Origin: Dendrobates tinctorius
Lineage: Eukaryota
Reading direction: 5' to 3'
Assembly: GCF_039654945.1 (NCBI RefSeq)
Contig: NW_027361731.1
Span: 558,001 to 622,000 of the forward strand
DNA: 64,000 nt
The notes beneath the pieces are model-generated. The model was not told the DNA's origin, did not search any database, and saw only the letters and a program-made list of their open reading frames with translations. This document shows, one piece after another, positions 1-64,000 of the stretch (its first letter is position 1; each line of letters opens with the position of its first letter). The position numbers and the translations under genes were made by a program.

Positions 1-3000
1 TTCTCTATGTGGAGTGCGACTCTGCGGGTGGAGGTCGGTGCTGGAGGCTCCATTATTCTCTGTGGAGTGCGGCTCTGCGGGTGGAGGTCGGTGCCGGAGA
101 CTCCATTATTCTCTATGTGGAGTGCGGCTCTGCGGGTGGAGGTCGGTGCTGGAGGCTCCATTATTCTCTATGTGGAGTGCGGCTCTGCGGGTGGAGGTCA
201 GTGCTGGAGGCTCCATTATTCTCTATGTGGGGTGGAGGTCGGTGCTGGAGGCTCCATTATTCTCTATGTGGAGTGTGGCTCTGCGGGTGGAGGTCAGTGC
301 TGGAGGCTCCATTATTCTCTATGTGGAGTGCGGCTCTGCGAGTGAAGGTCGGTGCTAGAGGCTCCATTATTCTCTATGTGGAGTGTGGCTCTGCGGGTGG
401 AGGTCAGTGCTGGAGGCTCCATTATTCTCTATGTGGGGTGGAGGTCGGTGCTGGAGGCTCCATTATTCTCTATGTGGGGTGGAGGTCGGTGCCGGAGGCT
501 CCATCATTCTCTATTGCTGGAGGCTCCATTATTCTCTATGTGGAGTGCGGCTCTGCGGGTGGAGGTCGGTGCCGGAGACTCCATTATTCTCTATGTGGAG
601 TGCGGCTCTGCGGGTGGAGGTCGGTGCTGGAGGCTCCATTTTTCTCTATGTGGAGTGCGGCTCTGCGGGTGGAGGTCGGTGCTGGAGGCTCCATTATTCT
701 CTATGTGGAGTGCGACTCTGCGGGTGGAGGTCGGTGCTGGAGGCTCCATTATTCTCTATGTGGAGTGCGGCTCTGCGGGTGGAGGTCAGTGCTGGAGGCT
801 CCATTATTCTCTATGTGGGGTGGAGGTCGGTGCTGGAGGCTCCATTATTCTCTATGTGGAGTGTGGCTCTGCGGGTGGAGGTCAGTGCTGGAGGCTCCAT
901 TATTCTCTATGTGGAGTGCGGCTCTGCGAGTGAAGGTCGGTGCTGGAGGCTCCATTATTCTCTATGTGGAGTGTGGCTCTGCGGGTGGAGGTCGGTGCTG
1001 GAGGCTCCATTATTCTCTATGTGGAGTGCGGCTCTGCGGGTGGAGGTCGGTGCTGGAGGCTCCATTATTCTCTATGTGGAGTGCGGCTCTGCGGGTGGAG
1101 GTCGGTGCCGGAGGCTCCATTATTCTCTATTGCTGGAGGCTCCATTATTCTCTATGTGGAGTGCGGCTCTGCGGGTGGAGGTCGGTGCTGGAGGCTCCAT
1201 TATTCTCTATGTGGGGTGGAGGTCGGTGCCGGAGGCTCCATTATTCTCTATGTGGAGTGTGGCTCTGCGGGTGGAGGTCAGTGCTGGAGGCTCCATTATT
1301 CTCTATGTGGGGTGGAGGTCGGTGCTGGAGGCTCCATTATTCTCTATGTGGGGTGGAGGTCGGTGCTGGAGGCTCCATTATTCTCTATGTGGGGTGGAGG
1401 TCGGTGCTGGAGGCTCCATTATTCTCTATGTGGGGTGGAGGTCGGTGCTGGAGGCTCCATTATTCTCTATGTGGAGTGCGGCTCTGCGGGTGGAGGTCGG
1501 TGCCGGAGGCTCCATTATTCTCTATTGCTGGAGGCTCCATTATTCTCTATGTGGAGTGCGGCTCTGCGGGTGGAGGTCGGTGCTGGAGGCTCCATTATTC
1601 TCTATGTGGGGTGGAGGTCGGTGCTGGAGGCTCCATTATTCTCTATGTGGAGTGTGGCTCTGCGGGTGGAGGTCGGTGCTGGAGGCTCCATTATTCTCTA
1701 TGTGGGGTGGAGGTCGGTGCCGGAGGCTCCATTATTCTCTATTGCTGGAGGCTCCATTATTCTCTATGTGGAGTGCGGCTCTGCGGGTGGAGGTCGGTGC
1801 TGGAGGCTCCATTATTCTCTATGTGGAGTGTGGCTCTGCGGGTGGAGGTCGGTGCTGGAGGCTCCATTATTCTCTATGTGGGGTGGAGGTCGGTGCCGGA
1901 GGCTCCATTATTCTCTATGTGGAGTGCGGCTCTGCGGGTGGAGGTCGGTGCTGGAGGCTCCATTATGCTCTATGTGGGGTGGAAGTCGGTGCTGGAGGCT
2001 CCATTATTCTCTATGTGGAGTGCGACTCTGCGGGTGGAGGTCGGTGCTGGAGGCTCCATTATTCTCTATGTGGAGTGCGGCTCTGCGGGTGGAGGTCGGT
2101 GCTGGAGGCTCCATTATTCTCTATGTGGAGTGCGGCTCTGCGGGTGGAGGTCGGTGCTGGAGGCTCCATTATTCTCTATGTGGAGTGCGGCTCTTCGGGT
2201 GGAGGTAGGTGCCGGAGGCCCCATTATTCTCTATGTGGAGTGCGGCTCTGCGGGTGGAGGTCGGTGCTGGAGGCTCCATTATTCTCTATGTGGAGTGCGG
2301 CTCTGCGGGTGGAGGTAGGTGCCGGAGGCTCCATTATTCTCTATGTGGAGTGCGGCTCTGCGGGTGGAGGTCGGTGCTGGAGGCTCCATTATTCTCTATG
2401 TGGAGTGCGGCTCTGCGGGTGGAGGTCGGTGCTGGAGGCCCCATTATTCTCTATGTGGAGTGCGGCTCTGCGGGTGGAGGTCGGTGCCGGAGGCTCCATT
2501 ATTCTCTATGTGGAGTGTGGCTCTGCGGGTGGAGGTCAGTGCTGGAGGCTCCATTATTCTCTATGTGGGGTGGAGGTCGGTGCTGGAGGCTCCATTATTC
2601 TCTATGTGGGGTGGAGGTCGGTGCTGGAGGCTCCATTATTCTCTATGTGGGGTGGAGGTCGGTGCTGGAGGCTCCATTATTCTCTATGTGGGGTGGAGGT
2701 CGGTGCTGGAGGCTCCATTATTCTCTATGTGGAGTGCGGCTCTGCGGGTGGAGGTCGGTGCCGGAGGCTCCATTATTCTCTATTGCTGGAGGCTCCATTA
2801 TTCTCTATGTGGAGTGCGGCTCTGCGGGTGGAGGTCGGTGCTGGAGGCTCCATTATTCTCTATGTGGGGTGGAGGTCGGTGCTGGAGGCTCCATTATTCT
2901 CTATGTGGAGTGTGGCTCTGCGGGTGGAGGTCGGTGCTGGAGGCTCCATTATTCTCTATGTGGGGTGGAGGTCGGTGCCGGAGGCTCCATTATTCTCTAT

Positions 3001-5115
3001 TGCTGGAGGCTCCATTATTCTCTATGTGGAGTGCGGCTCTGCGGGTGGAGGTCGGTGCTGGAGGCTCCATTATTCTCTATGTGGAGTGTGGCTCTGCGGG
3101 TGGAGGTCGGTGCTGGAGGCTCCATTATTCTCTATGTGGGGTGGAGGTCGGTGCCGGAGGCTCCATTATTCTCTATGTGGAGTGCGGCTCTGCGGGTGGA
3201 GGTCGGTGCTGGAGGCTCCATTATGCTCTATGTGGGGTGGAAGTCGGTGCTGGAGGCTCCATTATTCTCTATGTGGAGTGCGACTCTGCGGGTGGAGGTC
3301 GGTGCTGGAGGCTCCATTATTCTCTATGTGGAGTGCGGCTCTGCGGGTGGAGGTCGGTGCTGGAGGCTCCATTATTCTCTATGTGGAGTGCGGCTCTGCG
3401 GGTGGAGGTCGGTGCTGGAGGCTCCATTATTCTCTATGTGGAGTGCGGCTCTTCGGGTGGAGGTAGGTGCCGGAGGCCCCATTATTCTCTATGTGGAGTG
3501 CGGCTCTGCGGGTGGAGGTCGGTGCTGGAGGCTCCATTATTCTCTATGTGGAGTGCGGCTCTGCGGGTGGAGGTAGGTGCCGGAGGCTCCATTATTCTCT
3601 ATGTGGAGTGCGGCTCTGCGGGTGGAGGTCGGTGCTGGAGGCTCCATTATTCTCTATGTGGAGTGCGGCTCTGCGGGTGGAGGTCGGTGCTGGAGGCCCC
3701 ATTATTCTCTATGTGGAGTGCGGCTCTGCGGGTGGAGGTCGGTGCTGGAGGCTCCATTATTCTCTATGTGGGGTGGAAGTCGGTGCTGGAGGCTCCATTA
3801 TTCTCTATGTGGAGTGCGACTCTGCGGGTGGAGGTCGGTGCTGGAGGCTCCATTATTCTCTATGTGGAGTGCGGCTCTGCGGGTGGAGGTCGGTGCTGGA
3901 GGCTCCATTATTCTCTATGTGGAGTGCGGCTCTGCGGGTGGAGGTCGGTGCTGGAGGCTCCATTATTCTCTATGTGGAGTGCGGCTCTTCGGGTGGAGGT
4001 AGGTGCCGGAGGCCCCATTATTCTCTATGTGGAGTGCGGCTCTGCGGGTGGAGGTCGGTGCTGGAGGCTCCATTATTCTCTATGTGGAGTGCGGCTCTGC
4101 GGGTGGAGGTAGGTGCCGGAGGCTCCATTATTCTCTATGTGGAGTGCGGCTCTGCGGGTGGAGGTCGGTGCTGGAGGCTCCATTATTCTCTATGTGGAGT
4201 GCGGCTCTGCGGGTGGAGGTCGGTGCTGGAGGCCCCATTATTCTCTATGTGGAGTGCGGCTCTGCGGGTGGAGGTCGGTGCTGGAGGCTCCATTATTCTC
4301 TATGTGGAGTGCGGCTCTGTGGGTGGAGGTCGGTGCTGGAGGCTCCATTATTCTCTATGTGGAGTGCGGCTCTGCGGGTGGAGGTAGGTGCCGGAGGCCC
4401 CATTATTCTCTATGTGGAGTGCGGCTCTGTGGGTGGAGGTCGGTGCTGGAGGCTCCATTATTCTCTATGTGGAGTGCGGCTCTGCGGGTGGAGGTAGGTG
4501 CCGGAGGCCCCATTATTCTCTATGTGGAGTGCGGCTCTGCAGGTGGAGGTCGGTCCCGGAGGCTCCATTATTCTCTATGTGGAGTGTGGCTCTGCGGGTG
4601 GAGGTCGGTGCTGGAGGCTCCATTATTCTCTATGTGGAGTGCGGCTCTGCGGGTGGAGGTAGGTGCCGGAGGCTCCATTATTCTCTATGTGGAGTGCGGC
4701 TCTGCGGGTGGAGGTCGGTGCTGGAGGCTCCATTATTCTCTATGTGGAGTGCGGCTCTGCGGGTGGAGGTCGGTGCTGGAGGCCCCATTATTCTCTATGT
4801 GGAGTGCGGCTCTGCGGGTGGAGGTCGGTGCTGGAGGCTCCATTATTCTCTATGTGGAGTGCGGCTCTGTGGGTGGAGGTCGGTGCTGGAGGCTCCATTA
4901 TTCTCTATGTGGAGTGCGGCTCTGCGGGTGGAGGTAGGTGCCGGAGGCCCCATTATTCTCTATGTGGAGTGCGGCTCTGTGGGTGGAGGTCGGTGCTGGA
5001 GGCTCCATTATTCTCTATGTGGAGTGCGGCTCTGCGGGTGGAGGTAGGTGCCGGAGGCCCCATTATTCTCTATGTGGAGTGCGGCTCTGCAGGTGGAGGT
5101 CGGTCCCGGAGGCTC
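1..5115. repeat. GC-rich minisatellite with a 55-bp unit plus 41-bp and 25-bp deletion variants and higher-order duplications; runs off the left edge
   Basis: Unit TATGTGGAGTGCGGCTCTGCGGGTGGAGGTCGGTGCTGGAGGCTCCATTATTCTC; variants TATGTGGGGTGGAGGTC... (41 bp) and TATTGCTGGAGGCTCCATTATTCTC (25 bp). Rare variant stops recur at offsets 588 (345/933), 1258 (2208/3466), 536 and 550. Confidence 0.98.
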
Positions 5116-5329
5116 CTCACCAGAACTGTAGCAGGTATAGACCCCAATATCCACAGGTGTCCCTTCTAATTGGGGAAACTATCACCTCTAATAATCCTCG
5201 GACAGTTCTGGGAAACAGGGAAAGTGCCTCTTTATGGAGGGGACAGAAAGTCTGTTTAGTGTCTTTAGCTTCATAGTATCAGCTCTAATCCAATGGTGAG
5301 AGAGCGATTTACCCTGAAGAGTCACAAAT

Positions 5330-12700: not shown

Positions 12701-15700
12701 CGGAGGTTGTCTTCCCCGCCCTGATGGGGGACAGGAACACAAGAGGTTAAATACCCCTCCTCTTCCTGCAACCACCCGTGTTTTCCTGTCCCCTATGGAG
12801 CATGAAGAGGTCTACGATGGTGCTGCCGTTGCCGGCGATCGGAAGCACCCTACGTCTTTCACTTGTACATGCTGGGCAGCCGAGGCCGGGGGCCCTGCTC
12901 TCCAGTGGCTGCTCCCATCTCCTCCTGCTCGGTGGACTCGTGTCCCTCCCGCCTCTCCTGCGCCTCCTCGGGAGGTAAAGCGGGGCGGTGACGTGTGCGT
13001 CGGTGGGCCAAAGGGGGGAGGAGGAGCACAGATGACGCTGGACCCACGATTTTTAAAGATCCGGGTGGGGAGCACCAGGTAAGACAACCTGTATGACGCT
13101 GACTACAGACGGACATGGATGGTGATAAACCCTCTCTCTCTGCTTCTGCGGAGCCCAGCGTACCCCCCTCCTACTGTAAGTAGCAGATGTCGGCCCTGGC
13201 TATCCTACCTTTATTCCCTCCAGTGGCTTAGCTTACCTTCTCTCTCTCTCTTATAGGGAGAAAAGGTCTCTGACCCTAAGAGGACCAGCTGCAAATGTAA
13301 AATGTGTGCTGCTAGACTCCCCTCTTCATCTGGAAAAAGCTCTGCCAATCCTGTACAGAGGAGGTCCTATGTTCTGAACAGCCCTCTCTTCTGGATAGCA
13401 TTAAATCCCTCATAAAACAGGAGCTTCAGGCCTCCATGGCCACTTTATTCCAGATCCCGGTGCCACAACCACCTCTCTCTAAGAAGAGGAAGAAAGCTCC
13501 GATAGAATCTGACCCAGACTCGGGTGACATTCAGTCCTCTGGTTCGGAGGACACTTGGGAGAATGAGGGTTCTACTTCCACTTCCACTCCTAAATCGGTG
13601 AACAAACAATGTTACTTTTAGTTCCAAGGATATGGGTGAACAAATCAGTATGGTTAGGGGCACCATGGGGGTGGAGTTGGAAGAAGTTAAATACACGGTA
13701 CAGGATGAGATGTTTGGGGGTCTGAAGCCCAAAGATCAAAAGGGGTTTCCTGTACACGAGAACGTACAAAATCTGATCCTCCATGAATGTGGCCTCTCTG
13801 AAAATGGCCTCAGCGTGCCCTCTGAGCTGAAAAACTGTTTCTGCCTGGATGGTGATAATTCCTTATCGGAGACCCCAAAGGTAGTCGTGCAGGTGTCCAG
13901 GGTATCTAAGAAAACAGCCCTTCCCTTTGAGGACTCTTCCCAGCTCAAAGATCCTATGGATCAAAAAATTGAGAGTTTATTAAAGAAGTCGTGGGACACC
14001 TCTACAAATCTGCTAAATGCTAATATAGCTTCCACATGTGTGGCCAGGTCCCTGTTTCTATAGCTATATTTTGAACTTCTTCCACGCCACTTCCTGCTGG
14101 ATCGAGCAAAGGTGGCGTTTTTAATGTTGCACTTTGGAGGTGAGGCTCTGGCATGGTTGAACCCATTGTGGAAGAGCGAGTATTCGATCAGCTCCAATTT
14201 GCCTGCATTCTTGGAAGCTTTTCGCAAAGTGTTCGATCAACCTGGGTGAACCACCTCTGCAGCTTCCTTCCTCACCATCGGAGTCTATAGTGAGAAGTCA
14301 GGTGATCGCTTAGTCACACCCCTCCAGGCTCTCCGTGGTTCGTGGCACAGTGGTTCCACAAACCTCGACCGTGACATCTGGCCATATCACAATCATCTCA
14401 TCATTGTTTTGCCGCTAGACCACAACATGTTCCTCCACCCAAAACGGTTCAAATGACGTTGGTCATTGGAAGTCCTTTCCTATAGAAGTTACAACCTGAA
14501 GGAGCCACCTATGACTTGGGATAAGAAGACACTGATAATTACCTACCCAGTTCTGTAAACTGGAAAGTCAAATGACCGCGTATGTAGAATGTGCTGACAA
14601 GTTAGAAAATCACTTGAAGAAAAATATTAAGATGTGTATTGTAATGATGCTGTTGGCTTCCTAGATCCCTGATATCTTATTGGATGAATCTACCTCTGTA
14701 TAATAACAACAGAGTTTCCTCTTATCCTGACTTTTCAATTTAATATTGACTAACTTGAAACGGGGTCGTGAGAAACTACGTAAAACCATTACACCTGTGC
14801 GATGATATATCTCTAAGCTGTGTGTGGCTGATGGCTGTAATATTCATGCCTGCAGGGGATGTGTTGGAATGACTCGAGCCCTGATTTCCTGAATTCACTC
14901 TACGTCATAAATTCCATTATGTTTTCAATCCTAAGGAATTCAGATTACTGCACAATCTCTCCTGAAATGGGGAGACTAATACTTTCTCTACCCTTCTGGT
15001 CAGGACTCACAGTAGGTCCAATGGTCCACCATAAATGAGTGCAAGTCCTGTTTAGTATTGGATCTTGCCCCTCATGCATATGTTGTTGAGGATGTAACAT
15101 GTGTTTTTTTTCTCTGTCTATTTTTTTTTACAGTTTTTCATATTGTATGAGTTGTGCTGGAATTGGCCTGCCTCACTTATGTGAGCCTGTAACTTCATGG
15201 TAGTCTTTAAAAAAAAAAAAAAAAAAAAAAAAGGTTGCCTTTGCCTCTTCCAAAGGCCCAAGATCTTAATTTTAAAACACCACATCCCTGCAATATTATA
15301 AAAAGTCCTCCTTGAATGTCTAATACTTTTTAAAGAAACTCATTTAATGGAAAATATTGCCTGAGCTCTAAATTTATTTGCTGTTCTGTGATGTGACATG
15401 GCAAGAAGAATAGTTAGATAGCCGGGTCACAAACAGGAGAGCAGAGGAAATACAAAAGCAGAAGATGCTAGTGTAGTCAGTAAACGGGCCGGGGTGACAA
15501 CAATCGGGAGCTGAGCACAGGACTGAACCAGAGGAGAACAAGGCTGTGCCTGGCAGCTTCCGACAATATGCTTCTAGTTTTAGTAGGGCGTGGTGCTTTC
15601 CTGTTGGCTGAAGCAGGAAGCCGATTACTTCAGTTGGACACCACACAATCCCATACTGCTAGACTGGATGGTACTACAGGTCCCAGGCAACCTAATCTTT

Positions 15701-24365: not shown

Positions 24366-26207
24366 GTTTCGGACAAAATCATCTCCGAAAGGGGAGTGCA
24401 CTTTACGCCCAGGTTCTGGAAGGGATTCTGCTCTGCGCTTTGTTATTAATGTTTGTCTGTCTTCTGCATATCATCCTCAGACTAATGGACAGATGGAGCG
24501 GACTAATCAGTGGCGTAGCAACTGTTTGTGGCGCCCGGGGCGGTCGAAAAATTTGCCGCCCCTTTGGTCGTTGATAATCCGGAAGCATCCGAAGAGCCCA
24601 CACTACACTCAAAGATCTAATTTTTAGTCTGCTACTAACTCTGCTGTTATTATTTCTACATTTCTAGACTTTCATCTTCTTGCAGTTCTCTTTATATATA
24701 TGTATGTATTAGCTTGATGATGCTGGATGAAGACCTAATGGCTTTTTTAACCCCTTCCTGACATCAGACATACTATCCCGTGCATGGGACCCGGGCCCCT
24801 ATGCCCATGGACGGGATAGTACGTCTACCGCGATCAGCGGCGCCCACATGGTGAGCGCCGCTGATCGCGGCCGGGTGTCAGCTAATTATCACAGCTGACA
24901 CCCGGCACAATGTGTCAGGGGCGGTCACGGACCGCCCCCGACACGTTAACCCCTTGCACACCACGATCAAACATGATCGCGGTGTATCGGGGGTTAAAGG
25001 GAAGCATCGGCAGGGAGGGGGCTCCCTCCGTGCTTCCCTGAGCCCCCCACGGCAGCGCAATGTGCAGCGCTGCTGCCGGGGGCTCCTTTCCTACAGGCCC
25101 CCGAATCCAAGATGGCGACGGGGGCCTTCGGGGGCCTGCAGGAAGCTGGCTTCCTCAGTGCCTGCAAAGCGCAGGCATGAGGAAGCCTTCTGCACTGCCT
25201 GTGACAGATCGCTGATCTGTCACAGTGATCTGTGATGTGACAGATCAGCGATCTGTCACAGGACAGTGATGTCCCACCTGGGACTATTTAATAAAGTAAA
25301 AAAAAAATAAAAAAAAGTGTTAAAATAATTTAAAAAAAATCGCCAAATAAATTACAAAAAAAAAAAAATATTCCCCCAAATAAATCCATTTTTTGAAAAT
25401 AAAAAAAAAACAATAAAAGTACACATATTAGGTTTCGCCGCGTCTGTAACGACCCGCCCTATAAAAATGTCCCAATAGTTAACCCCTTTAGCGAACCCCT
25501 TAAAAAATAAAAATAAAAAACGAAGCAAAAAAGAATGATTTATTATCATACCGCCAAACAAAAAGTGTAATAACGCGCAATCAAAAAGACGCATATAAAT
25601 ATCCATGGTACCGCTGAAAACGTCATCTTGTCCCGCAAAAAACGAGCCACCACACAGCATCATCAGCGAAAAAATAAAAAAGTTATAGCTCGCAGAATAA
25701 AGCGATGCAAAAATAATTATTTTTTATATAAAATAGTTTTCATTGCATAAAACCGACAAAACATAAAAAAAGACCTAAATGAGGTATCGCTGTAACCGTA
25801 CTGACCCGAAGAATAAAACCGCTTTATCAATTTTACCGCACGCGGAACGGTGTAAACGCACCCCCCCAAAAGAAATTCATGAAACGCTGGTTTTTGCTCA
25901 TTCTGCGTCCCAAAAATCGGAATAAAAAGCGATCAAAAAATGTCACGTGCCCGAAAATGGTACCAATAAAAACGTCAACTCGTCCCGCAAAAAATAAGAC
26001 CTCACATGACTCAGTGGGTCAAAATACGGAAAAATTATAGCTCTCAATATGTGGTGATGCAAAAACTATTTTTACAATAAAAAGCGTGCGACAGCTGCCA
26101 AAAATAAAAACCGCCATAAATAGTAAATCAAACCCCCCCGGTATCACCCCCTTAGTTAGGGAAAAATAATAAAATAAAAAAAATGTATTTATTTCCATTT
26201 TTCCACT

Positions 26208-26310
26208 ACGGTTAGGGTTAGGGTTAGGGTTAGGGCTAGGGTTAGGGCTAGGGTTAGGGCTAGGGCTGAGATTAGGGTTAGGGGTGTGTTGGGGTTCGGG
26301 TTGGAGTTAG
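26208..26310 (+). repeat. Interstitial telomere-like (TTAGGG/CTAGGG)n tract
   Basis: GGTTAGGGTTAGGGTTAGGGTTAGGGCTAGGG... read directly. Confidence 0.9.
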
Positions 26311-26314
26311 AATT

Positions 26315-28860
26315 GGGGGTTTCCACTGTTTGGGCACATCAGGGGCTCTCCAAATGCAACATGGCGTCTGATTTCAATTCCAGCCAATTCTGAGTTGAAA
26401 AAGTCAAATGGTGCTCCTTCCCTTCCAAGCTCTGACATGCGCCCAAACAGTGTTTTACCCCCACATGTAGGGTATCAGCCTACTCAGGACAAATTGCAAA
26501 ACAATTTTTGGGGTCCAATTTCTCCTGTTACCCATAGGAAAATAAAAAATTGGGGGCAAAAATATCATTTTTGTGGAAAAAAATTATTTTTTTATTTTCA
26601 CGTCCAAGCGTTATAAACTTCTGTGAAGCACTTGGGGGTTCAAAGTGCTCACCACACATCTAGATAAGTTCCGTGGGGGGTCTAGTGTCCAAAATGGGGT
26701 CACTTGTGGGGAGTTTCAATAGTTTAGGTACATCAGGGGCTCTCCAAACGCACATGACACCCGCAGACCATTCCATCAAAGTCTGCATTCCAAAATGTCA
26801 CTGCTTCCCTTCCGAGCCCCGACGTGTGTCCATACAGTAGTTTTCTCCCACATATGGGGTGTCAGCGTACTCAGGCCAAATTGGACAACAACCTTTGGGG
26901 TTCAATTTCTCCTGTTATCCTTGGGAAAATAAAAAAATTGGGGACTAATTGATCATGTTTGTGGAAAAAATACGATTTTTTTATTTTCATGCCCGAGCAT
27001 TATAAACTTCTGTGAAGCCCTTGGGGGTTCAAAGTGCTCACCACACATCTAGATAAGTTCCTTAGGGGGACTAGTTTTCAAAATGGGGTCATTTGTGGGG
27101 GGTTTCCACTGTTTAGGTACATTAGGGGCTCTCCAAAGGCAACATGACACCCGCAGACCATTCCATCAAAGTCTGCATTCCAAAACATCACTACTTCCCT
27201 TCCGAGCCCCGACGTGTGCCCATACAGTAGTTTTCTCCCACATATGGGGTATCAGTTTACTCAGGACAAATTGGACAACAACTTTTGGGGTCCAATTTCT
27301 CCTGGTACCCTTGGGAAAATAAAAAAATGGTGACTAAAATATCATGTTTGTGGAAAAAATATGATTTTTTTTATTTTCACGCCCGGGCGTTATAAACTTC
27401 TGTGAAGCACTGGGGGGTTCAAAGTGCTCACCACACATCTAGATAAGTTCCTTGGGGGTCTAGTTTACAAAATGGTGTCATTTGTGGGGGGTTTCCACTG
27501 TTTAGGTACATCAGGGGTTTTCCAATCGCAACATGGTGTCCGATTTCAATTCCAGCCAAAAACGTCAAATGGCGCTGCTTCCCTTCCGAGCTCTGCCATG
27601 CGCCCAAATAGTGGTTTACCCCCACATGTGGGGTATCAGCGTACTCAGGACAAATTGCACAATAACTTTTAGGGTCCTGTTACCCTTGGAAAAATAAGAA
27701 TTGAGGGTGAAAAGATCATTTTTGTGGAAAAAATATGATTTTTTAATTGTACGGCTTTATGTTATAAACTTCTGTGAAGCCCTTGGGGGTTCAAAGTTCT
27801 CACCACACATCTAGATAAGTTCCTTAGGGGGTCTAGTTTCCAAAATGGTGTCATTTGTGGGGGGTTTCCACTGTTTTGGTACATCAGGGGTTTTCCAATC
27901 GCAACATGATGTCCGATCTCAATTCCAGCCAAAAACGTCAAATGGCGCTGCTTCCCTTCCGAGCTCTGCCATGCGCCCAAATAGTGGTTTACCCCCACAT
28001 GTGGGGTATCAGCGTACTCAGGACAAATTGCACAATAACTTTTAGGGTCCTGTTACCCTTGGAAAAATAAGAATTGAGGGTGAAAAGATCATTTTTGTGG
28101 AAAAAATATGATTTTTTAATTGTACGGCTTTATGTTATAAACTTCTGTGAAGCCCTTGGGGGTTCAAAGTTCTCACCACACATCTAGATAAGTTCCTTAG
28201 GGGGTCTAGTTTCCAAAATGGTGTCATTTGTGGGGGGTTTCCACTGTTTTGGTACATCAGGGGTTTTCCAATCGCGACATGATGTCCGATCTCAATTCCA
28301 GCCAAAAACGTCAAATGGCGCTGCTTCCCTTCCGAGCTCTGCCATGCACCCAAATAGTGGTTTACCCCCACATGTGGGGTATCAGCGTACTCAGGACAAA
28401 TTGCACAATAACTTTTAGGTTCCTGTTACCCTTGGGAAAATAAAAATTGGGGTGAAAAGGTCATTTTTGTGGAAAAAATATGATTTTTTAATTGTACCGC
28501 TGTACGTTATGAACTTCTGTAAAGCCCTTGTGGGTTCAAAGTTCTCACCACATATCTACATAAGTTCCTTGGGGGGGTCTAGTTTCCAAAATGGGGTCAC
28601 TTGTAGGGGGTTTCCACTGTTTAGGTACATCAGGGACTCTCCAAACGTGACATGGCGTCCGATCTGAATTCCAGACAATTTTGCATTGAAAAAGTCAAAC
28701 GGCGCTCCTTCCATTCTGAGCTCTGCCATGCGCCGAAACAGTCGTTCCCCCCCCCACATATCAGGTATCAGCGTACTCAGGACAAATTGCACAATAACTT
28801 TTGCAGTCCAATTTCTCCTGTTACCCTTGGTAAAATAAAAAAAATTGAACCTGAAGTATT
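26315..28860. repeat. ~373-390-bp tandem repeat (~6-7 units) inside the piggyBac-type element
   Basis: Identical ORFs recur at offset 373 (27762/28135; 27845/28218); recurring motif CTCACCACACATCTAGATAAGTTCC. Confidence 0.92.
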
Positions 28861-29981
28861 TTTTTTGTGAAAAAAAGTTAGATGTTCATTTTTTTTTAAA
28901 TATTCAAAAAAATTCCTGTGACGCACCTAAAGGGTTAATAAACTTCTTGAATGTGGTTTTGAGCACCTTAAGGGGTGCAGTTTTTAGAATGGTGTCACTT
29001 TTGGGTATTTTCTATCATATAGACCCCTCAAAGTGGCTTCAAATGTGATGTAGTCCGTAAAAATAAAATGGTGTTGTAAAAATGAGAAATCGCTGGTCAA
29101 CTTTTAACCCTTATAACTTCCTAACAAAAAAAAATTTAGTTTCCAATATTGTGCTGATGTAAAGTAAACATGTGGGAAATGCTAGTTATCAAGTTTTTTG
29201 GGTGCCATATCTCTGTGATTTAAGGGCATAAAAATTCAAAGTTGGAAAATTGCAAAATTTTCCAAATTTTCGCCAAATTTCCGTTTTTCTCACAAATAAA
29301 CGCAAGTTATTTGAATTAAATTTTACCACTAACATGAAGTACAATATGTCACGAGAAAACAATGTCAGAATAACCGGGATCCATGGAAGCGTTCCAGGGT
29401 TATGACCTCATAAAGGTACAGTGGTCAGAATTGTAAAAATTGGCCCGGTCATGAAAGTGCAAACCACCCTTGGGGGTGAAGGGGTTAATAATAATTTTTA
29501 ATAATGTGACAGAAAAAAAAAGAAAGTACAAATTATTTTCGAAACTTGGGTAAAGTTCAGCGGTGTTCGCCGGGCCGGAAGTGCGCTGCCACCCCCACGG
29601 TGGAGACACACAGGCAGGTCCTGCTGGCTGCTGCACTGTGCCTCCGTGCTTCTCCCACAGAGAGGAATTGCTGCTGCTGCTGCGCCGCCCCCACACACGT
29701 GCCGCCTGGGGCGGACCGCCCCCCCACGCTACGCCACTGGGCACTGCTGAGGTGTTATGGAAGCCCAGGTTGCTTTGATAGCAGCCTTCAGCTCGTCTTA
29801 AGAGATCTGGTTGCTCATAATATTAGCCAACGTGTTGCGCAGAGATAGACAGGGAGCGCTCTACTGGTTCAAAATGAAAATGGAAGTGAAGCTCCCTGAA
29901 CTGACATAGAAATCAGGACACTTTGAGGATAAGAAAGTTTAATTTCTTTGTGCTTTGCAACACTTTGGGCAATCCCTTTAA

Positions 29982-30387
29982 GGCTGGGGTCACACTAGCG
30001 TATGGCATCCGATGCGAGAGCACTGCTGCGAGTGTGAGTTGAGTGTCCTGCTACTGCACTCCCATTCTCTCACAAAGAGCTGATCAGAGCACAGCTGCGG
30101 AGGAGGCGGAGAAAGTAGTTTCTCCATCTTCTCCGTTGCCGGCGTCACCGTATATCGCACCGCACTCAGATGATATCCGAGTGATGTGCGTTGTGTCACT
30201 CGCACCCATAGATGCAAGTGAGCCGAGACTCGGCCAAGTCTCATTGCCAATCGCAGCATGCTGCGACCGATTCAGCTTGAGAAAATTGCAGATATGATCT
30301 GCCCCAAAGAATAACACTGGAACGAGTGCTATGCAATGTTTTCTCGCATAGCACTCGTCCGTATTCCACGGTAGTGTGACGCCGGCC
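29982..30387. mobile_element. Harbinger/PIF-type MITE in the captured STK25 intron
   Basis: TIRs GGCTGGGGTCACACTA / TAGTGTGACGCCGGCC; TAA TSD on both sides. Confidence 0.8.
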
Positions 30388-30451
30388 TAAGTCTCCCATC
30401 GAGACTCAGTTTCCTAGTACAGAGCGCATTAATAAAGGTTTAGGATGTTAC

Positions 30452-31298
30452 CTTCAGGTAGGAGCCATAATAGCGAGTGATATAAGGACTGTCACACTGG
30501 CTCAGAACAGTGATCTCTTGTTGAATGTCCTCAATCTCATCTTCTGCCTCTTCCAGGTCTATGATCTTGATGGCCACCACTTCTTTGCTGCGATTCTCTA
30601 TACCTTTGTACACTTCTCCAAATGATCCCCTCCCAATGCGCTCCAGCTTGGTGAAGAGGTGTTCTGGGTCCATTCTCGATCCCTACAGAGGAAGAAATAA
30701 TCAGAAAGCCACAATACCTAGTGCCTTTACCATTTACTTTCTAGATGAGCCGTCACATTACGGCAGCTGCTTCCCTCCCCCCTGTCCCATTTCCTTTACT
30801 GAATTCCGTATACAAAGCCCGGGGCAAGTGGCGGCGTAATGCAGGCTGCACCGGGCAGTTATACCGGTCACAGTCCTCCTCGTGTAGCAATAACCAGTGG
30901 TGGATTCCGTGTACAGACAGCAGTCACTTTGATATTAAATCACAATCAGTTTTGTTTTTCTGAAATCAGCCACAAACTGTCTTCACTTTCCAATCTGCAT
31001 GGTAAAAATAATGACATTCTTTCAGCTGATCCCTGAGGTTCATTCTGTACTGCTGTATGTGGATGTGCGCAACTCTGGAGCTGGTTAGTGCAGGTGCAGC
31101 TCATGAGAAGCGAGACGAGACCCTGACTAGTGCACAGCAGACACGATGCAACGAAAACAGACCCGTGAAGAAGCCACGTTACCCATAAGACCTGCAGGCT
31201 GGCTGAGTTAGCGCGGCCTCTTGGTGGGCGACCCAATAGCGGTGTACTGCAATAAGAGTGAGGATTACCTGTGATGGGAAGTCCCGTAGGTGCGCCAT
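30452..31298 (-). pseudogene. STK25: Truncated copy of serine/threonine kinase 25 (GCKIII): coding exons 31298-31269 and 30682-30452
   Basis: MAHLRDFPSQ|gt...ag|[77 protein letters not shown]|gt. The MAHLR start, EVYKG, KEVVAIK and PYITRY favour STK25 over STK24/STK26. The 30-nt and 231-nt exons are in phase 0 with no stops; no downstream kinase exons are seen. Confidence 0.9.
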
Positions 31299-31669
31299 TC
31301 TGGAGCAATCTGATTCCGCTCAGTGACCCATAGACTGGGGGTGGCGGCACAGCGCACACAACTTGCCCCACTTCGCTCGCCCCTCTATAATCTGCACAGC
31401 CCTGAATGCAACACACTGACAAGAAGCAGCAGCTGTGAGACTGTTCTGCTACCAATAGTCATAGGCAGTGGCTGCAATGTGCAGAGATAACATGTCCCTA
31501 CTGCTGGGATGTATGGAGCCCAGCACACTACATCCGCAGCTCCCTCCTATACTAAGCTATGGCAGCCCATAGCACTGAGCCATAGCCACTCAGCACAGCA
31601 ATCCACAGGGTTCTAACAGCTGGCCTGCTCTATACAGAGAACAAAACAGTCCTCCCTGATGCCACACAC

Positions 31670-31990
31670 GTACTTACGTCATCCCCGCCCAGGATCCTGG
31701 GACATGTAGTTCTTTTGGAAGCCGTTGTCTATTGTCCTGATGGCACCCAGAACTACAAATCCCACAAGCTAAAGGCGCGGGGTGTTCTGGGAGTTGTAGA
31801 AGCTAGGCATGAACGTAAACAGGAGACATTTAAGTCATGTGACTGGAGTTAGGCGTTACGTCACGCCTATGGAAACCGCTCCGGGATAGTGGGAGGGAAT
31901 AAGGGGAACTGGTATCACGTGACTACAAGTAACCCATGCACTGCTGATATACTGTGGTGGTGGCCGTGTGCGCCCGCGTGTGCTCCGCCC
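31670..31990 (-). promoter_or_regulatory. Probable STK25 non-coding first exon and housekeeping-type promoter
   Basis: Minus-strand donor GAC|GTAAGT at 31677; GC box; three ZNF143/THAP11-type ACTACAnnTCCCA motifs (CTGGGACATGTAGT ~31697, ACTACAAATCCCA 31752, CTGGGAGTTGTAG ~31788); E-box TCACGTGA at ~31915; CpG-rich. Confidence 0.7.
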
Positions 31991-33222
31991 GTGGTTGTCA
32001 CAGACCATAGAAAATAAAATGTATTCCCTGCTCTGCGCTTCTCCCACAGAGGAGAGGAATTGCTGCTGCTGTCGCGCCGCCCCCACACACGTGCCGCCTG
32101 GGACGGACCGCCCCCCCACGCTACGCCACTGGGACTAATCAGACTCTGGAACAGTATCTTCGATGCTATATCAGCCATTCGCAGGATGACTGGTTGGAGT
32201 TGCTTCCACTAGCAGAATTTTGTTACAACTCTCAGAGTTCATCTACTAAGGTAACACTCTTCTTTGCCAACCTGGGTTATCATCCCAATATTCTTCCCAG
32301 ATCCCCTATCGATGCACCGGTGCCTGCAGTACATGAGAGGTTGACAGCACTGAGACACAATCTGGAAACCCTGAAGGAATCGCTGTCTACTGAACAGGAT
32401 AGATATAAGAGATCTGCCGATAGGTGCAGGCCTCCCAGATCTATGTTCGAGGTAGGAGACTCTGTGTGGTTATCTACTAAAAACTTGAGATTGAACATTC
32501 CATCACAGAAACTGGGACAATAATTCAAGATCAAGATCTCTGGGATCTTGAGTTCTGTTGCCTGTTGTCTGAAGTTGCCGAGGACCTTGAAGGTACATCC
32601 TGTGTTTCATGTCTCCCTGTTAAAACCAGTGTCTCCAAATACTTTTCGGAGTTGTATTACACCTCCTCAGCCTGTGATAGTGTAAGGACAAGTACAGTTT
32701 GTTGTAGAGAAGATTCTGGATTCTAGAATCCGCAGGAATCAACTGCATTACCTAATCAAATGGCAAGGATATCCATCTGAGGAGAACTCTTGGGAGCTGG
32801 TGGGCAATATCTGTGCTCCTCAAAAAATTACTCTGTTCCATGAGAAATATCCTGACAAGCCTGGTCCTGGATCGTCCTGAGGCCGCTTCTGAGGTGGGAG
32901 TAATGTAAGAATTCTGCACTTTCTTTGTGACTGTTCGCCTTGATCCAAGATGGAGTCTGGGATCTCACCCTGTCATGGAATCTCCTGTCTGTCCTGATTA
33001 TTTAAGTCCGGGTCATGTGTTCTCCTGTGCCTGAGTATTTTGTTGCTGTCTTGCTCCTGCCCAGGCTGGGATCAGAACCAGAGCGCTGAGTGGATTTGCC
33101 CTAAATTCCATACCAATGATCCCTTTAAGAGACCCTGGGGTCAGAACCACAGAGCTGAGTGAAACTGTCTTAACTTCCATACTAGCGATCCCTTTAAGAG
33201 AGGCCTGTGGTCAAAACCAAAG

Positions 33223-57689: not shown

Positions 57690-57884
57690 TAGAAAAGGCG
57701 GCGCGGGGTAATTGTGCCAGTAGTGAGGGGGAATAATGGCGGGAAGGTCACTGACTGAGGAGAAGTCTCCATGTCTGCACTCCGGAGATCATGTGACCCC
57801 TGACTCCTCCCCTCCTGTGACCTCATCACAGGTCCTGTGCGCACAGAGCAGCCATATATGTGGAGTGCAGCTGTGCAGGTTAGT
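57690..57884 (+). promoter_or_regulatory. Putative promoter/first non-coding exon of a further (ZNF-type) gene
   Basis: GC-rich; CATGTGAC and TGTGACCTCATCAC motifs; ends GCAG|GTTAGT (donor-like); 57857-57880 matches the satellite unit upstream of the ZNF gene at 22/24. Confidence 0.45.
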
Positions 57885-60800
57885 GATGGGCAGTCTGGGG
57901 CTTCTTGCTCCTTTCCCCTCTTTTCTCCCTCCTGTCCCTTCACTATAAAGCCTGGGCCTCATTATACAGCTGTACAGGGGTCTAGTGATGGGCAGTCCGG
58001 CTCTTCTTGCTCCTTTCCCCTCTTTTCTCCCTCCAGTCCCTTCACTATAAAGCCTGGGCCTCATTATACAGCTGTACAGGGGTCTAGTGATGTGCAGTCC
58101 GGTTCTTCTTGCTCCTTTACCCTCTTTTCTCCCTCCAGTTCCTTCACTATAAAGCCTGGGCCTCATTATACAGCTGTATGGGGTCTAGTGATGGGCAGTC
58201 CGGCTCTTCTTGCTCTTTCCCCTCTTTTCTCCCTCCAGTCCCTTCACTATAAAGCCTGGGCCTCATTATACAGCTGTACAGGGGTCTAGTGATGGGCAGT
58301 CCAGCTCTTCTTGCTCCTTTCCCCTCTTTTCTCCCTCCTGTCCCTTCACTATAAAGCCTGGGCCTCATTATACAGCTGTACAGGGGTCTAGTGATGGGCA
58401 GTCCGGCTCTTCTTGCTACTTTCCCCTCTTTTCTCTCTCCAGTCCCTTCACTATAAAGCCTGGGCCTCATTATACAGCTGCACAGGGGTCTAGTGATGGG
58501 CAGCCCGGCTATTCTTGCTCCTTTCCCTCTTTTCTCCCTCCAGTCCCTACACTATAAAGCCTGGGCCTCATTATACAGCTGTACAGGGGTCTAGTGATGG
58601 GCAGTCCGGCTCTTCTTGCTCCTTTCCCCTCTTTTCTCCCTCCTGTCTCTTCACTATAAAGCCTGGGCCTCATTATACAGCTGTACAGGGCTCTAGTGGT
58701 GGGCAGTCTGGCTCTTCTTGCTACTTTCCCCTCTTTTCTCCCTCCAGTCCCTTCACTATAAAGCCTGGGCCTCATTATACAGCTGTACAGGGGTCTAGTG
58801 ATGTGCAGTCCGGCTCTTCTTGCTCCTTTCCCCTCTTTTCTCCCTCCAGTCCCTTCACTATAAAGCCTGGGCCTCATTATACAGCTGTACAGGGGTCTAG
58901 TGATGGGCAGTCCGGCTCTTCTTGCTCCTTTCCCCTCTTTTCTCCCTCCAGTCCCTTCACTATAAAGCCTGGGCCTCATTATACAGCTGTACAGGGGTCT
59001 AGTGATGGGCAGTCCGGCTCTTCTTGCTCCTTTTCCCTCTTTTCTCCCTCCAGTCCCTTCACTATGAAGCCTGGGCCTCATTATACAGCTGTACAGGGGT
59101 CTAGTGATGGGCAGTCCAGCTCTTCTTGTTCCTTTCCCCTCTTTTCTCCCTCCTGTCCCTTCACTATAAAGCCTGGGCCTCATTATACAGCTGTACAGGG
59201 GTCTAGTGATGGGCAGTCCGGCTCTTCTTGCTCCTTTCCCCTCTTTTCTCTCTCCAGTCCCTTCACTATAAAGCCTGGGCCTCATTATACAGCTGTACAG
59301 GGGTCTAGTGATGGGCAGTCCAGCTCTTCTTGCTCCTTTCCCCTCTTTTCTCCCTCCTGTCCCTTCACTATAAAGCCTGGGCCTCATTATACAGCTGTAC
59401 AGGGGTCTAGTGATGGGCAGTCCGGCTCTTCTTGCTCCTTTCCCCTCTTTTCTCCCTCCAGTCCCTTCACTATGAAGCCTGGGCCTCATTATACAGCTGT
59501 ACAGGGGTCTAGTGATGTGCAGTCCGGTTCTTCTTGCTCCTTTACCCTCTTTTCTCCCTCCAGTTCCTTCACTATAAAGCCTGGGCCTCATTATACAGCT
59601 GTACAGGGGTCTAGTGATGGGCAGTCCGGCTCTTCTTGCTCCTTTCCCCTCTTTTCTCCCTCCTGTCTCTTCACTATAAAGCCTGGGCCTCATTATACAG
59701 CTGTACAGGGCTCTAGTGGTGGGCAGTCTGGCTCTTCTTGCTACTTTCCCCTCTTTTCTCCCTCCAGTCCCTTCACTATAAAGCCTGGGCCTCATTATAC
59801 AGCTGTACAGGGGTCTAGTGATGTGCAGTCCGGCTCTTCTTGCTCCTTTCCCCTCTTTTCTCCCTCCAGTCCCTTCACTATAAAGCCTGGGCCTCATTAT
59901 ACAGCTGTACAGGGGTCTAGTGATGGGCAGTCCGGCTCTTCTTGCTCCTTTCCCCTCTTTTCTCCCTCCAGTCCCTTCACTATAAAGCCTGGGCCTCATT
60001 ATACAGCTGTACAGGGGTCTAGTGATGGGCAGTCCGGCTCTTCTTGCTCCTTTTCCCTCTTTTCTCCCTCCAGTCCCTTCACTATGAAGCCTGGGCCTCA
60101 TTATACAGCTGTACAGGGGTCTAGTGATGGGCAGTCCAGCTCTTCTTGTTCCTTTCCCCTCTTTTCTCCCTCCTGTCCCTTCACTATAAAGCCTGGGCCT
60201 CATTATACAGCTGTACAGGGGTCTAGTGATGGGCAGTCCGGCTCTTCTTGCTCCTTTCCCCTCTTTTCTCTCTCCAGTCCCTTCACTATAAAGCCTGGGC
60301 CTCATTATACAGCTGTACAGGGGTCTAGTGATGGGCAGTCCAGCTCTTCTTGCTCCTTTCCCCTCTTTTCTCCCTCCTGTCCCTTCACTATAAAGCCTGG
60401 GCCTCATTATACAGCTGTACAGGGGTCTAGTGATGGGCAGTCCGGCTCTTCTTGCTCCTTTCCCCTCTTTTCTCCCTCCAGTCCCTTCACTATGAAGCCT
60501 GGGCCTCATTATACAGCTGTACAGGGGTCTAGTGATGTGCAGTCCGGTTCTTCTTGCTCCTTTACCCTCTTTTCTCCCTCCAGTTCCTTCACTATAAAGC
60601 CTGGGCCTCATTATACAGCTGTATGGGGTCTAGTGATGGGCAGTCCGGCTCTTCTTGCTCTTTCCCCTCTTTTCTCCCTCCAGTCCCTTCACTATGAAGC
60701 CTGGGCCTCATTATACAGCTGTACAGGGGTCTAGTGATGTGCAGTCCGGCTCTTCTTGCTACTTTCCCCTCTTTTCTCTCTCCAGTCCCTTCACTATAAA

Positions 60801-63800: not shown

Positions 63801-64000
63801 CAGTCCGGCTCTTGTTGCTCCTTTCCCCTCTTTTCTCCCTCCAGTCCCTTCACTATAAAGCCTGGGCCTCATTATACAGCTGTACAGGGGTCTAGTGATG
63901 GGCAGTCCGGCTCTTCTTGCTCCTTTTCCCTCTTTTCTCCCTCCAGTCCCTTCACTATGAAGCCTGGGCCTCATTATACAGCTGTACAGGGGTCTAGTGA
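57870..64000. repeat. 102-bp satellite, ~60 units, with 1020-bp higher-order duplications; runs off the right edge
   Basis: Unit CTAGTGATGGGCAGTCCGGCTCTTCTTGCTCCTTTCCCCTCTTTTCTCCCTCCAGTCCCTTCACTATAAAGCCTGGGCCTCATTATACAGCTGTACAGGGGT; variant patterns recur at 58561/59581 and 61561/62581. Confidence 0.98.

Follow-up and report, generated by a model that had tools for sequence, protein, structure and literature searches.

A probable composite hAT transposon carrying the promoter and first exons of STK25 in the frog Dendrobates tinctorius

Short terminal inverted repeats (TIRs) and 8-bp target-site duplications (TSDs) are the hallmarks of hAT transposons. Across 100 animal genomes, four multicopy TIR elements that carry pieces of host genes were found, three of which belong to Xenopus, and transcription has been reported for a fraction of these multicopy animal Pack-TIRs (PMC8277862). 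Pack-hAT-N8_XT of Xenopus tropicalis is known from three copies, each with its own TSD, and its cargo is 291 bp of 5′ untranslated region (5′UTR) (Tan et al. 2021, PMC8277862). Gap-filling and FoSTeST template-switch models have been put forward for the origin of Pack-TIRs (PMC8277862), and both abortive single-end insertion and composite elements have been described for maize hAT transposons (10.1101/082677; PMC9910405). Here we analyse a stretch of 64,000 nucleotides of the D. tinctorius genome, referred to as the window (assembly GCF_039654945.1, contig NW_027361731.1, positions 558,001 to 622,000 of the forward strand), in which a unit at positions 24508–32131 joins hAT-type ends to the promoter and first exons of the kinase gene STK25. 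This unit is probably one copy of a low-copy composite non-autonomous hAT transposon of D. tinctorius (a Pack-hAT) that formed once and is mobile; the evidence supports that it moved as one piece and captured STK25 as DNA.

The composite resembles Pack-hAT-N8_XT in being a non-autonomous hAT element of a frog that carries the 5′-end fragment of a host gene at several loci with distinct 8-bp TSDs, with the parent gene elsewhere and no simple element at the parental locus. It differs in that its cargo is about eightfold larger (2.2 kb compared with 291 bp) and takes in the promoter, two coding exons and one entire intron; in that a complete internal right terminus and a 76-bp spacer are kept, so that three kinds of junction are preserved; and in that two of its copies have been annotated as protein-coding genes. 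Like the maize hAT macrotransposons (Ac/Ds pairs; Tam3L, the creator of White Cap; 10.1101/082677, PMC9910405), it places host gene sequence between hAT termini within a single 8-bp TSD, with an inner terminus that has no matching TSD. The maize donor locus still shows the flanking elements, however, whereas the parental STK25 locus shows neither, and the second end of the STK25 composite is only a 103-bp fragment separated from the gene by foreign DNA. Plant Pack-MULEs and CACTA elements likewise duplicate and mobilize gene fragments with introns, which are often transcribed, but they belong to other superfamilies (9–11-bp or 3-bp TSDs), usually hold the captured DNA between their arms and lack a complete internal terminus. 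A transposon that carries the start of a gene is an event of a kind that is known but rare in vertebrates.

Structure and insertion of the unit

In order, the unit comprises a hAT-type miniature inverted-repeat transposable element (MITE) with a 4.7-kb piggyBac-like insert, 2.2 kb of STK25 DNA, a 76-bp foreign spacer and a second right end. Its transposon-derived parts and flanks are given here, with L001 and L002 denoting the loci of two sister copies:

24500–24507: TSD copy 1 (GGACTAAT), within the Gypsy integrase frame
24508–24750, plus strand: left arm of the non-autonomous hAT-type element, TIR at 24508–24519; 97–99.5% identical to the left arms of L001 and L002
24751–29484: later nested piggyBac-like non-autonomous insert with termini CCCCTTC...GAAGGGG; TTAA at 24747–24750 and 29485–29488
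29485–29739, plus strand: right arm of the element with the complete inner right terminus, TIR at 29728–29739
32026–32131, plus strand: outer right-end fragment of about 103 bp, TIR at 32120–32131; the end that would be used in transposition, with fixed differences from the inner right end
32132–32139: TSD copy 2 (GGACTAAT)
32140–32877, plus strand: continuation of the interrupted, decayed Ty3/Gypsy (chromovirus-type) integrase, with SH3_Tf2-1 at 32524–32682 and a chromodomain at 32686–32877

Reading of the sequence and a scripted check of the ends both place a perfect 8-bp duplication, GGACTAAT, on either side of 24508–32131. The 12-bp TIR CAGTGGCGTAGC begins at 24508 and recurs as its reverse complement with last bases at 29739 and 32131; the exact 12-mer has only these three occurrences in the 64-kb window, compared with a chance expectation of 0.16 matches at one mismatch or fewer. 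The complete inner right end runs to 29739, and the GGCACTGC that comes next does not match the GGACTAAT duplication. All of the coordinates in the original prediction, which had a left TIR at 24508 and a right end at 29739 without a matching TSD, were reproduced. The second right end (start at 32026/32029) does stop at 32131 before the exact TSD, as had been claimed, but the sequence that it shares with the first is about 103 bp long rather than about 110 bp. Positions that differ between the inner and outer right ends are fixed in both the window copy and L001, which indicates that the two ends come from different element copies. Two features agree with hAT membership: the TSDs of the window copy (GGACTAAT) and of L001 (TCTCAGGC) are both perfect and 8 bp long, and the left, inner right and outer right ends all carry a short TIR, CAGTGGCGTAGC, that fits the CAG/TAG start of the superfamily. 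Elsewhere in the window, positions 13221–13232 read CAGTGGCTTAGC, one mismatch from the TIR, and may belong to a further member or a relative of this hAT family.

Excision of 24508–32139 restores one frame (...AYHPQTNGQMERTN|QTLEQYLRCY...) of a Gypsy integrase, the rve motif of which was recognized by eye. The rejoined frame and the TSD bear out the proposal that the unit was inserted as one piece. Pfam matches to SH3_Tf2-1 (4e-7; 32524–32682) and Chromo (8.5e-16; 32686–32877) downstream of the rejoined frame show that the host element is a chromovirus-type Ty3/Gypsy copy, which had already decayed (upstream frameshifts and stops). Pfam searches with the integrase pieces beside the junction and with the pieces of the upstream open reading frame (ORF) gave no matches, and no uninterrupted Gypsy paralogue of the insertion site was found within the window.

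The captured STK25 DNA

The DNA between the inner right terminus and the outer right end divides as follows, L003 being the STK25 locus of D. tinctorius:

29740–31949, minus strand: captured STK25 DNA, about 96% identical by substitutions to L003:9329–11580, from a Tc1-like intron fragment to about 320 bp upstream of the far end (31631) of an RNA-like contig
29986–30387: small unrelated MITE in the captured intron, present in the D. tinctorius parent and absent in Ranitomeya imitator (from high contig depth and comparison of loci)
30452–30682, minus strand: second coding exon, 77 codons of the kinase N-lobe, with AG acceptor and GT donor; private change Arg18His
30683–31268, minus strand: intron of 586 nt, GT..AG, spliced out in the RNA-like contig of a sister copy (joint 30681->31268)
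31269–31631, minus strand: first exon, coding at 31298..31269 (MAHLRDFPSQ, GT donor), 5′UTR contiguous to at least 31631
31632–31949, minus strand: captured STK25 promoter and upstream DNA; break relative to the parent within 31949–31958, at the microhomology ACCAC
31950–32025: 76-bp spacer, common to all three composite copies and missing at the parental locus in both D. tinctorius and R. imitator

The cargo follows D. tinctorius STK25 (L003:9329–11580) collinearly through both exons, the whole of one intron and part of the following one, which identifies STK25 as the source. The 231-nt exon (30682..30452) has a Pfam Pkinase match (6e-15), and a search of solved structures ranked STK25 (140 bits) above STK24 (135) and MST4 (133). 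At the intronic edge, 29740–29798 is a fragment of a very high-copy Tc1-like repeat. The retained promoter, exons and intron establish that capture took place at the DNA level, as had been proposed. The cargo does not fit a retrocopy of STK25, which would be intronless and promoterless with a poly(A) tract, as the 586-nt intron, part of the second intron and promoter-side DNA are all kept. No other STK25 exons occur elsewhere in the 64-kb window and the full-length gene is on another contig, so the original prediction survives the objection that the remaining exons might lie nearby on the minus strand. Two of its details required revision. Of the roughly 2.3 kb that had been assigned to the host gene, only 29740 to about 31949 is STK25, the 76 bp at 31950–32025 being foreign to the parental locus; and the three exons that had been described are two exons with one complete intron, because the 5′UTR and the ATG form a single exon.

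The evidence for this exon comes from sequencing runs, which were located with the cargo; the interval 29300–32500 was compared with four of them, all as contigs rather than raw reads, and contig depths were not taken as copy numbers. Run X5, which has the same species label and is from another sample, behaves as RNA. One X5 contig joins 30681 to 31268 (GT..AG, minus strand) and then continues unspliced to 31631, which leaves a separate ‘exon 1’ unsupported. In a DNA run, a contig covers the junction between the cargo and the outer end (31905–32083), and the DNA sample contains the cargo in several versions.

Sister copies at two other loci

A protein search with the exon ORF led to a RefSeq protein of 90 amino acids (aa), the cluster of which contained a second 90-aa member, and these gave the two sister loci. 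L001 (9160–15105) has its parts in the window order (outer right end, the 76 bp, cargo with unchanged boundaries, inner right end, MITE body and left TIR) and is flanked by its own perfect 8-bp duplication, TCTCAGGC. The same architecture within a different perfect TSD shows that the composite is a mobile unit, and answers the earlier suggestion that other copies might have different 8-bp TSDs. Repair of a break in situ, considered as the origin of the window copy, was rejected in view of the identical boundaries of L001 at another locus. L002 (8808–12083; 3,276 bp) is a rearranged variant. It has the cargo, the 76 bp and the inner right-end junction in common with the other copies and lies between two MITEs in inverted orientation, the one on the promoter side being a full MITE in the opposite orientation that is truncated 29 bp before its right terminus. 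No TSD was found at L002, and its two MITEs (96.6% alike) are no closer to each other than to the other copies. L002 may have arisen when a window-type copy inserted tail-to-tail next to another MITE, followed by loss of the palindromic centre; alternatively, it may be a composite with two left termini, by analogy with maize Tam3Lc, which it resembles in having two left termini and sandwiched host fragments.

The composite is present at at least three loci, two of which have independent perfect TSDs. Transposable-element sequence lies on either side of a segment duplicated from a parental gene on another contig, as in the definition of Pack-TIRs (PMC8277862), and the distinct TSDs of multicopy Pack-TIRs are seen in the window and L001 copies, L002 being a third locus without a TSD. 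The two 90-aa proteins (XP_073442731.1 and XP_073405514.1) are RefSeq ‘STK25-like’ models, with gene models at L001:10001–10882 and L002:10001–10867. Each consists of 10 + 77 codons followed by three read-through codons (VTS*). They end by read-through of a splice donor in transposon cargo, and are therefore not independent kinase genes.

The TTAA site of the piggyBac-like insert is a single uninterrupted TTAA in L001 and in both L002 elements. Because the site is empty in all sister MITE arms, the ancestral composite was about 2.9 kb long, before the piggyBac-like insert, in line with the pre-piggyBac form that had been postulated.

The parental locus and the capture junctions

A profile search weighted to the frog N-terminus led to an anuran STK25 cluster and from there to the STK25 loci of D. 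tinctorius (XP_073437290.1; L003) and R. imitator (L004). A full-length parental STK25 does exist elsewhere, as expected, at the separate locus L003, and its next coding exon lies only about 0.74 kb past the capture break. In the parent, the site of the inner right-end junction reads …CAGCAGTGCC|ACAGGCTGATCG…; the Tc1-like element there is uninterrupted, with no duplication and no footprint, and the sequence equals the Tc1-like consensus seen as loose ends in read contigs. The composite carries an exact TIR terminus at the site at which the parent reads through. No MITE is present at the junction site in the parental intron that follows the 231-nt exon, and the terminal 11-mer of the element (one variable position allowed) has no match in 33 kb of L003 or 36 kb of L004.

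The 76-bp spacer is absent from the STK25 upstream regions of L003 and L004. The upstream block of the parent is 92% identical to that of R. imitator (local score 82, compared with a shuffle maximum of 27), and this conservation between the two species indicates that the parental sequence is ancestral and the 76 bp foreign. In a contig of a related species (run X7), the 76 bp adjoins the promoter and the contig departs at 32027. An ancestral parental origin of the 76 bp, which this contig could suggest, was rejected because the conserved parental upstream sequence differs; the contig is better explained by a composite-derived copy carried by that relative. The interval separating the conserved upstream block from the block of the STK25 promoter is about 225 bp longer in R. 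imitator than in D. tinctorius (L004:9150–9390 compared with L003:9260–9330), reflecting an insertion or deletion.

Three kinds of junction can be distinguished. Where the inner right end adjoins host DNA, the break falls exactly after the last base of the terminus and there is no microhomology; the junction of STK25 with the 76 bp has microhomology (ACCAC); and the junction of the 76 bp with the outer end cuts the element about 103 bp from its tip. One TSD is common to the outer termini and the inner terminus abuts donor DNA without a TSD, so that the composite has the structure that defines a macrotransposon. The donor locus does not fit that definition: its insertion site is empty and footprint-free, its 33 kb have no match to the terminal 11-mer, and the DNA that adjoins the outer end of the composite does not come from it.

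Divergence among copies

By substitutions, the copies differ from one another by 3.0–3.4%, from the parent by 3.8–4.3% and from R. imitator by about 13%. With changes at 1,521 sites polarized by R. imitator, 4 fall on the shared stem, 18–22 are private to each copy and 18 lie on the parent branch. The short shared stem compared with the long private branches indicates one capture followed by quick spread, and these divergences point to a capture at a depth of about a quarter of the Dendrobates–Ranitomeya split. Coding changes over the three copies comprise 3 synonymous and 7 non-synonymous substitutions; L001 alone has five replacements, one of them at the last base of the exon. The 90-aa N-lobe ORF appears, from these counts, to be drifting neutrally.

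Two patterns in the substitutions stand apart. Eleven of the 18 substitutions on the parent branch, mostly transversions, lie within 250 bp of the capture breakpoint (L003:9329–9580, equivalent to window 31702–31949), a local excess in the promoter region of the genuine gene. Shared derived letters at 31315–31422 and at codons 4 and 79 ally L002 with the window copy at some sites and with L001 at others, which suggests gene conversion among the copies or sorting of early variants.

Origin and spread of the composite

The ancestral form would have begun with the left arm and body of a 0.5-kb MITE and its complete inner right terminus, continued with 2.2 kb of STK25 (a partial intron, the 231-nt exon, the 586-nt intron, the ATG/5′UTR exon and about 320 bp of promoter-side DNA), and ended with the 76-bp foreign spacer and the last ~103 bp of another element copy. 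To move it, a hAT transposase acting in trans would cut at the left TIR and the outer right end, skipping the inner right end, and the whole unit would be pasted with an 8-bp duplication; this would have happened at least twice, into the Gypsy integrase of the window and at L001. The piggyBac-like insert would have entered the window copy afterwards.

The anatomy of the junctions tips the balance slightly towards a single birth, shortly before the spread, by an aberrant transposition or repair event. A right terminus would have been joined exactly, in a transposase-like manner, to a site in the STK25 intron, and synthesis would then have copied 2.2 kb up through the promoter, switched template at the ACCAC microhomology to 76 bp from elsewhere and ended in another right end. 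A junction at the exact base is the outcome expected of transposase strand transfer or of run-off at a cut end, and the three kinds of junction together with the empty parental site fit template switching after a single-end insertion or an ectopic gap repair. Composite insertions produced by alternative transposition with re-replication, in so far as PMC9910405 relates the work of Zhang et al. 2014 (PMC4270019), have a similar layout: a terminus, a whole element, donor flank, a repair junction, other DNA and a fractured second end, with one TSD around the whole and the ability to move again as a macrotransposon. According to that account, they differ in requiring a reversed pair of ends at the donor, of which none is visible in the STK25 parent, and they are known only experimentally, in maize.

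Several points weigh against this reconstruction as a whole. The origin step is inferred solely from junction anatomy. L002 has a different promoter-side partner and no TSD, which is explained only through a secondary deletion. The hAT target preference nTnnnnAn is at most half matched by the 8-mers seen at three sites, a number too small to judge by, with GGACTAAT having the A alone and TCTCAGGC and GGCACTGC neither position. An autonomous hAT element sharing these TIRs was not identified, and no search for one was made. The Gypsy junctions of the window copy (24507/24508 and 32131/32132) rest on the assembly, and the evidence of expression concerns L001 rather than the window copy. Finally, the two TSD-flanked copies could arise from MITE insertions that were converted by gap repair templated on the composite.

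Of the other explanations, classical macrotransposition comes closest, although we regard it as unlikely. In the parent, one MITE would have lain within the STK25 intron and a solo right end ahead of the promoter, and a transposase pairing the left end of the MITE with the solo right end would have moved the whole interval, which is essentially the origin put forward in the original prediction. The geometry fits, given that a complete inner right terminus abuts host DNA and the TSD pairs the outer ends; hAT macrotransposons are documented in maize (10.1101/082677; PMC9910405), and the donor allele could since have been lost. The parental locus, however, gives this origin no support: the intron site is empty and footprint-free and the terminal 11-mer is absent from 33 kb, so that neither the intronic MITE nor a recognizable upstream end, both of which had been expected, is present, and foreign DNA separates the promoter from the outer right end, whereas the parental upstream sequence is conserved with R. 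imitator. The microhomology at the junction of parental and spacer DNA is typical of repair, and a second insertion and its truncation would have to be added within a very short stem.

Only marginally less credible, and likewise improbable, is that the arrangement at L002 came first, with cargo between two inverted MITEs and two left termini outside, as in maize Tam3Lc, and that the window and L001 type was derived from it. L002 has the same spacer boundary, the three copies are about equidistant, and precedents exist for composites that have two left termini and host fragments sandwiched inside (10.1101/082677). Against this order of events, the terminal 29 bp of the right end that are missing in L002 are present in the window copy and L001 and would have required a new template; L002 has no TSD, and its 96.6%-alike MITEs are no closer mutually than to the others.

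We give somewhat less weight still to spread without movement of the unit, in which MITEs at the window and L001 sites were excised and the gaps repaired from a composite template, leaving old TSDs around each copy. Gap repair from an ectopic template is the favoured origin of most animal Pack-TIRs (PMC8277862) and its sequence outcome is indistinguishable from transposition, yet it would take two independent rare ectopic repairs, both of which copied all 2.9 kb and stopped at the same boundaries. A unit with two good ends could more simply have transposed, and multicopy Pack-TIRs with distinct TSDs are read in the literature as products of transposition (PMC8277862). That the unit is the genuine 5′ end of STK25, its exons and splice sites being intact, or a chimera of the assembly is hardly credible, given the full-length gene on another contig, in which the next coding exon follows about 0.74 kb from the break, the lack of further STK25 exons in the window, the same junctions at two other loci of the public assembly and the DNA-run contig across the junction of cargo and outer end.

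Nested inserts and satellites

The piggyBac-like insert of the window copy holds a tandem array of a 373-bp unit in 6.6 copies (26315–28843) and has a (TTAGGG)-like run near 26210–26290. Related sequence (78–86% identity) at L004:2216–7013, upstream of R. imitator STK25, indicates that its repeat family is shared among dendrobatids. The MITE body of L001 has a different insert of 3.1 kb (L001:11845–14922), with tandem units of about 30–45 bp bordered by (TATG)n, (AT)n and (AG)n microsatellites.

Long tandem arrays occupy both ends of the window (230–5116 and 57811–64000). One is a 55/110-bp satellite with about 43 copies of 110 bp and a strong G-over-C skew; the other is a 102-bp satellite of at least 58 copies, many of them 97–100% alike, with the opposite skew. 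Both arrays yield long spurious ORFs, and a window-wide repeat scan was swamped by the 102-bp satellite and gave no information on the element.

Expression and implications

The X5 contigs bear letters private to L001, which identifies L001 as the transcribed copy that was seen. Other X5 contigs pass through the donor of the 231-nt exon into the intron, and depth over the spliced intron is zero. The promoter in the cargo still works, and the sister copy is transcribed, spliced and read through the donor into a 90-aa ORF for the kinase N-lobe. There is a slim chance that the composite acts as a mobile cassette of promoter, ATG exon and phase-0 splice donor that may seed chimeric genes when it inserts in a suitable orientation, or that the 90-aa peptides have dominant-negative or regulatory effects on GCKIII partners. 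An APOBEC-like partner for such a chimera was looked for by eye downstream of L002, where 8.8 kb contained no APOBEC-like ORF of at least 70 aa; no domain search was made there.

The exact-terminus junction, the microhomology junction and the filler are preserved together with the parent and an outgroup, and the locus therefore bears on how Pack elements are born, by macrotransposition or by aberrant transposition plus template switching. It also corrects annotation, in that two RefSeq ‘STK25-like’ models are explained as transposon cargo. For the frog itself, it means that a working promoter, coding exons and a splice donor have been moved around a large, repeat-rich genome.

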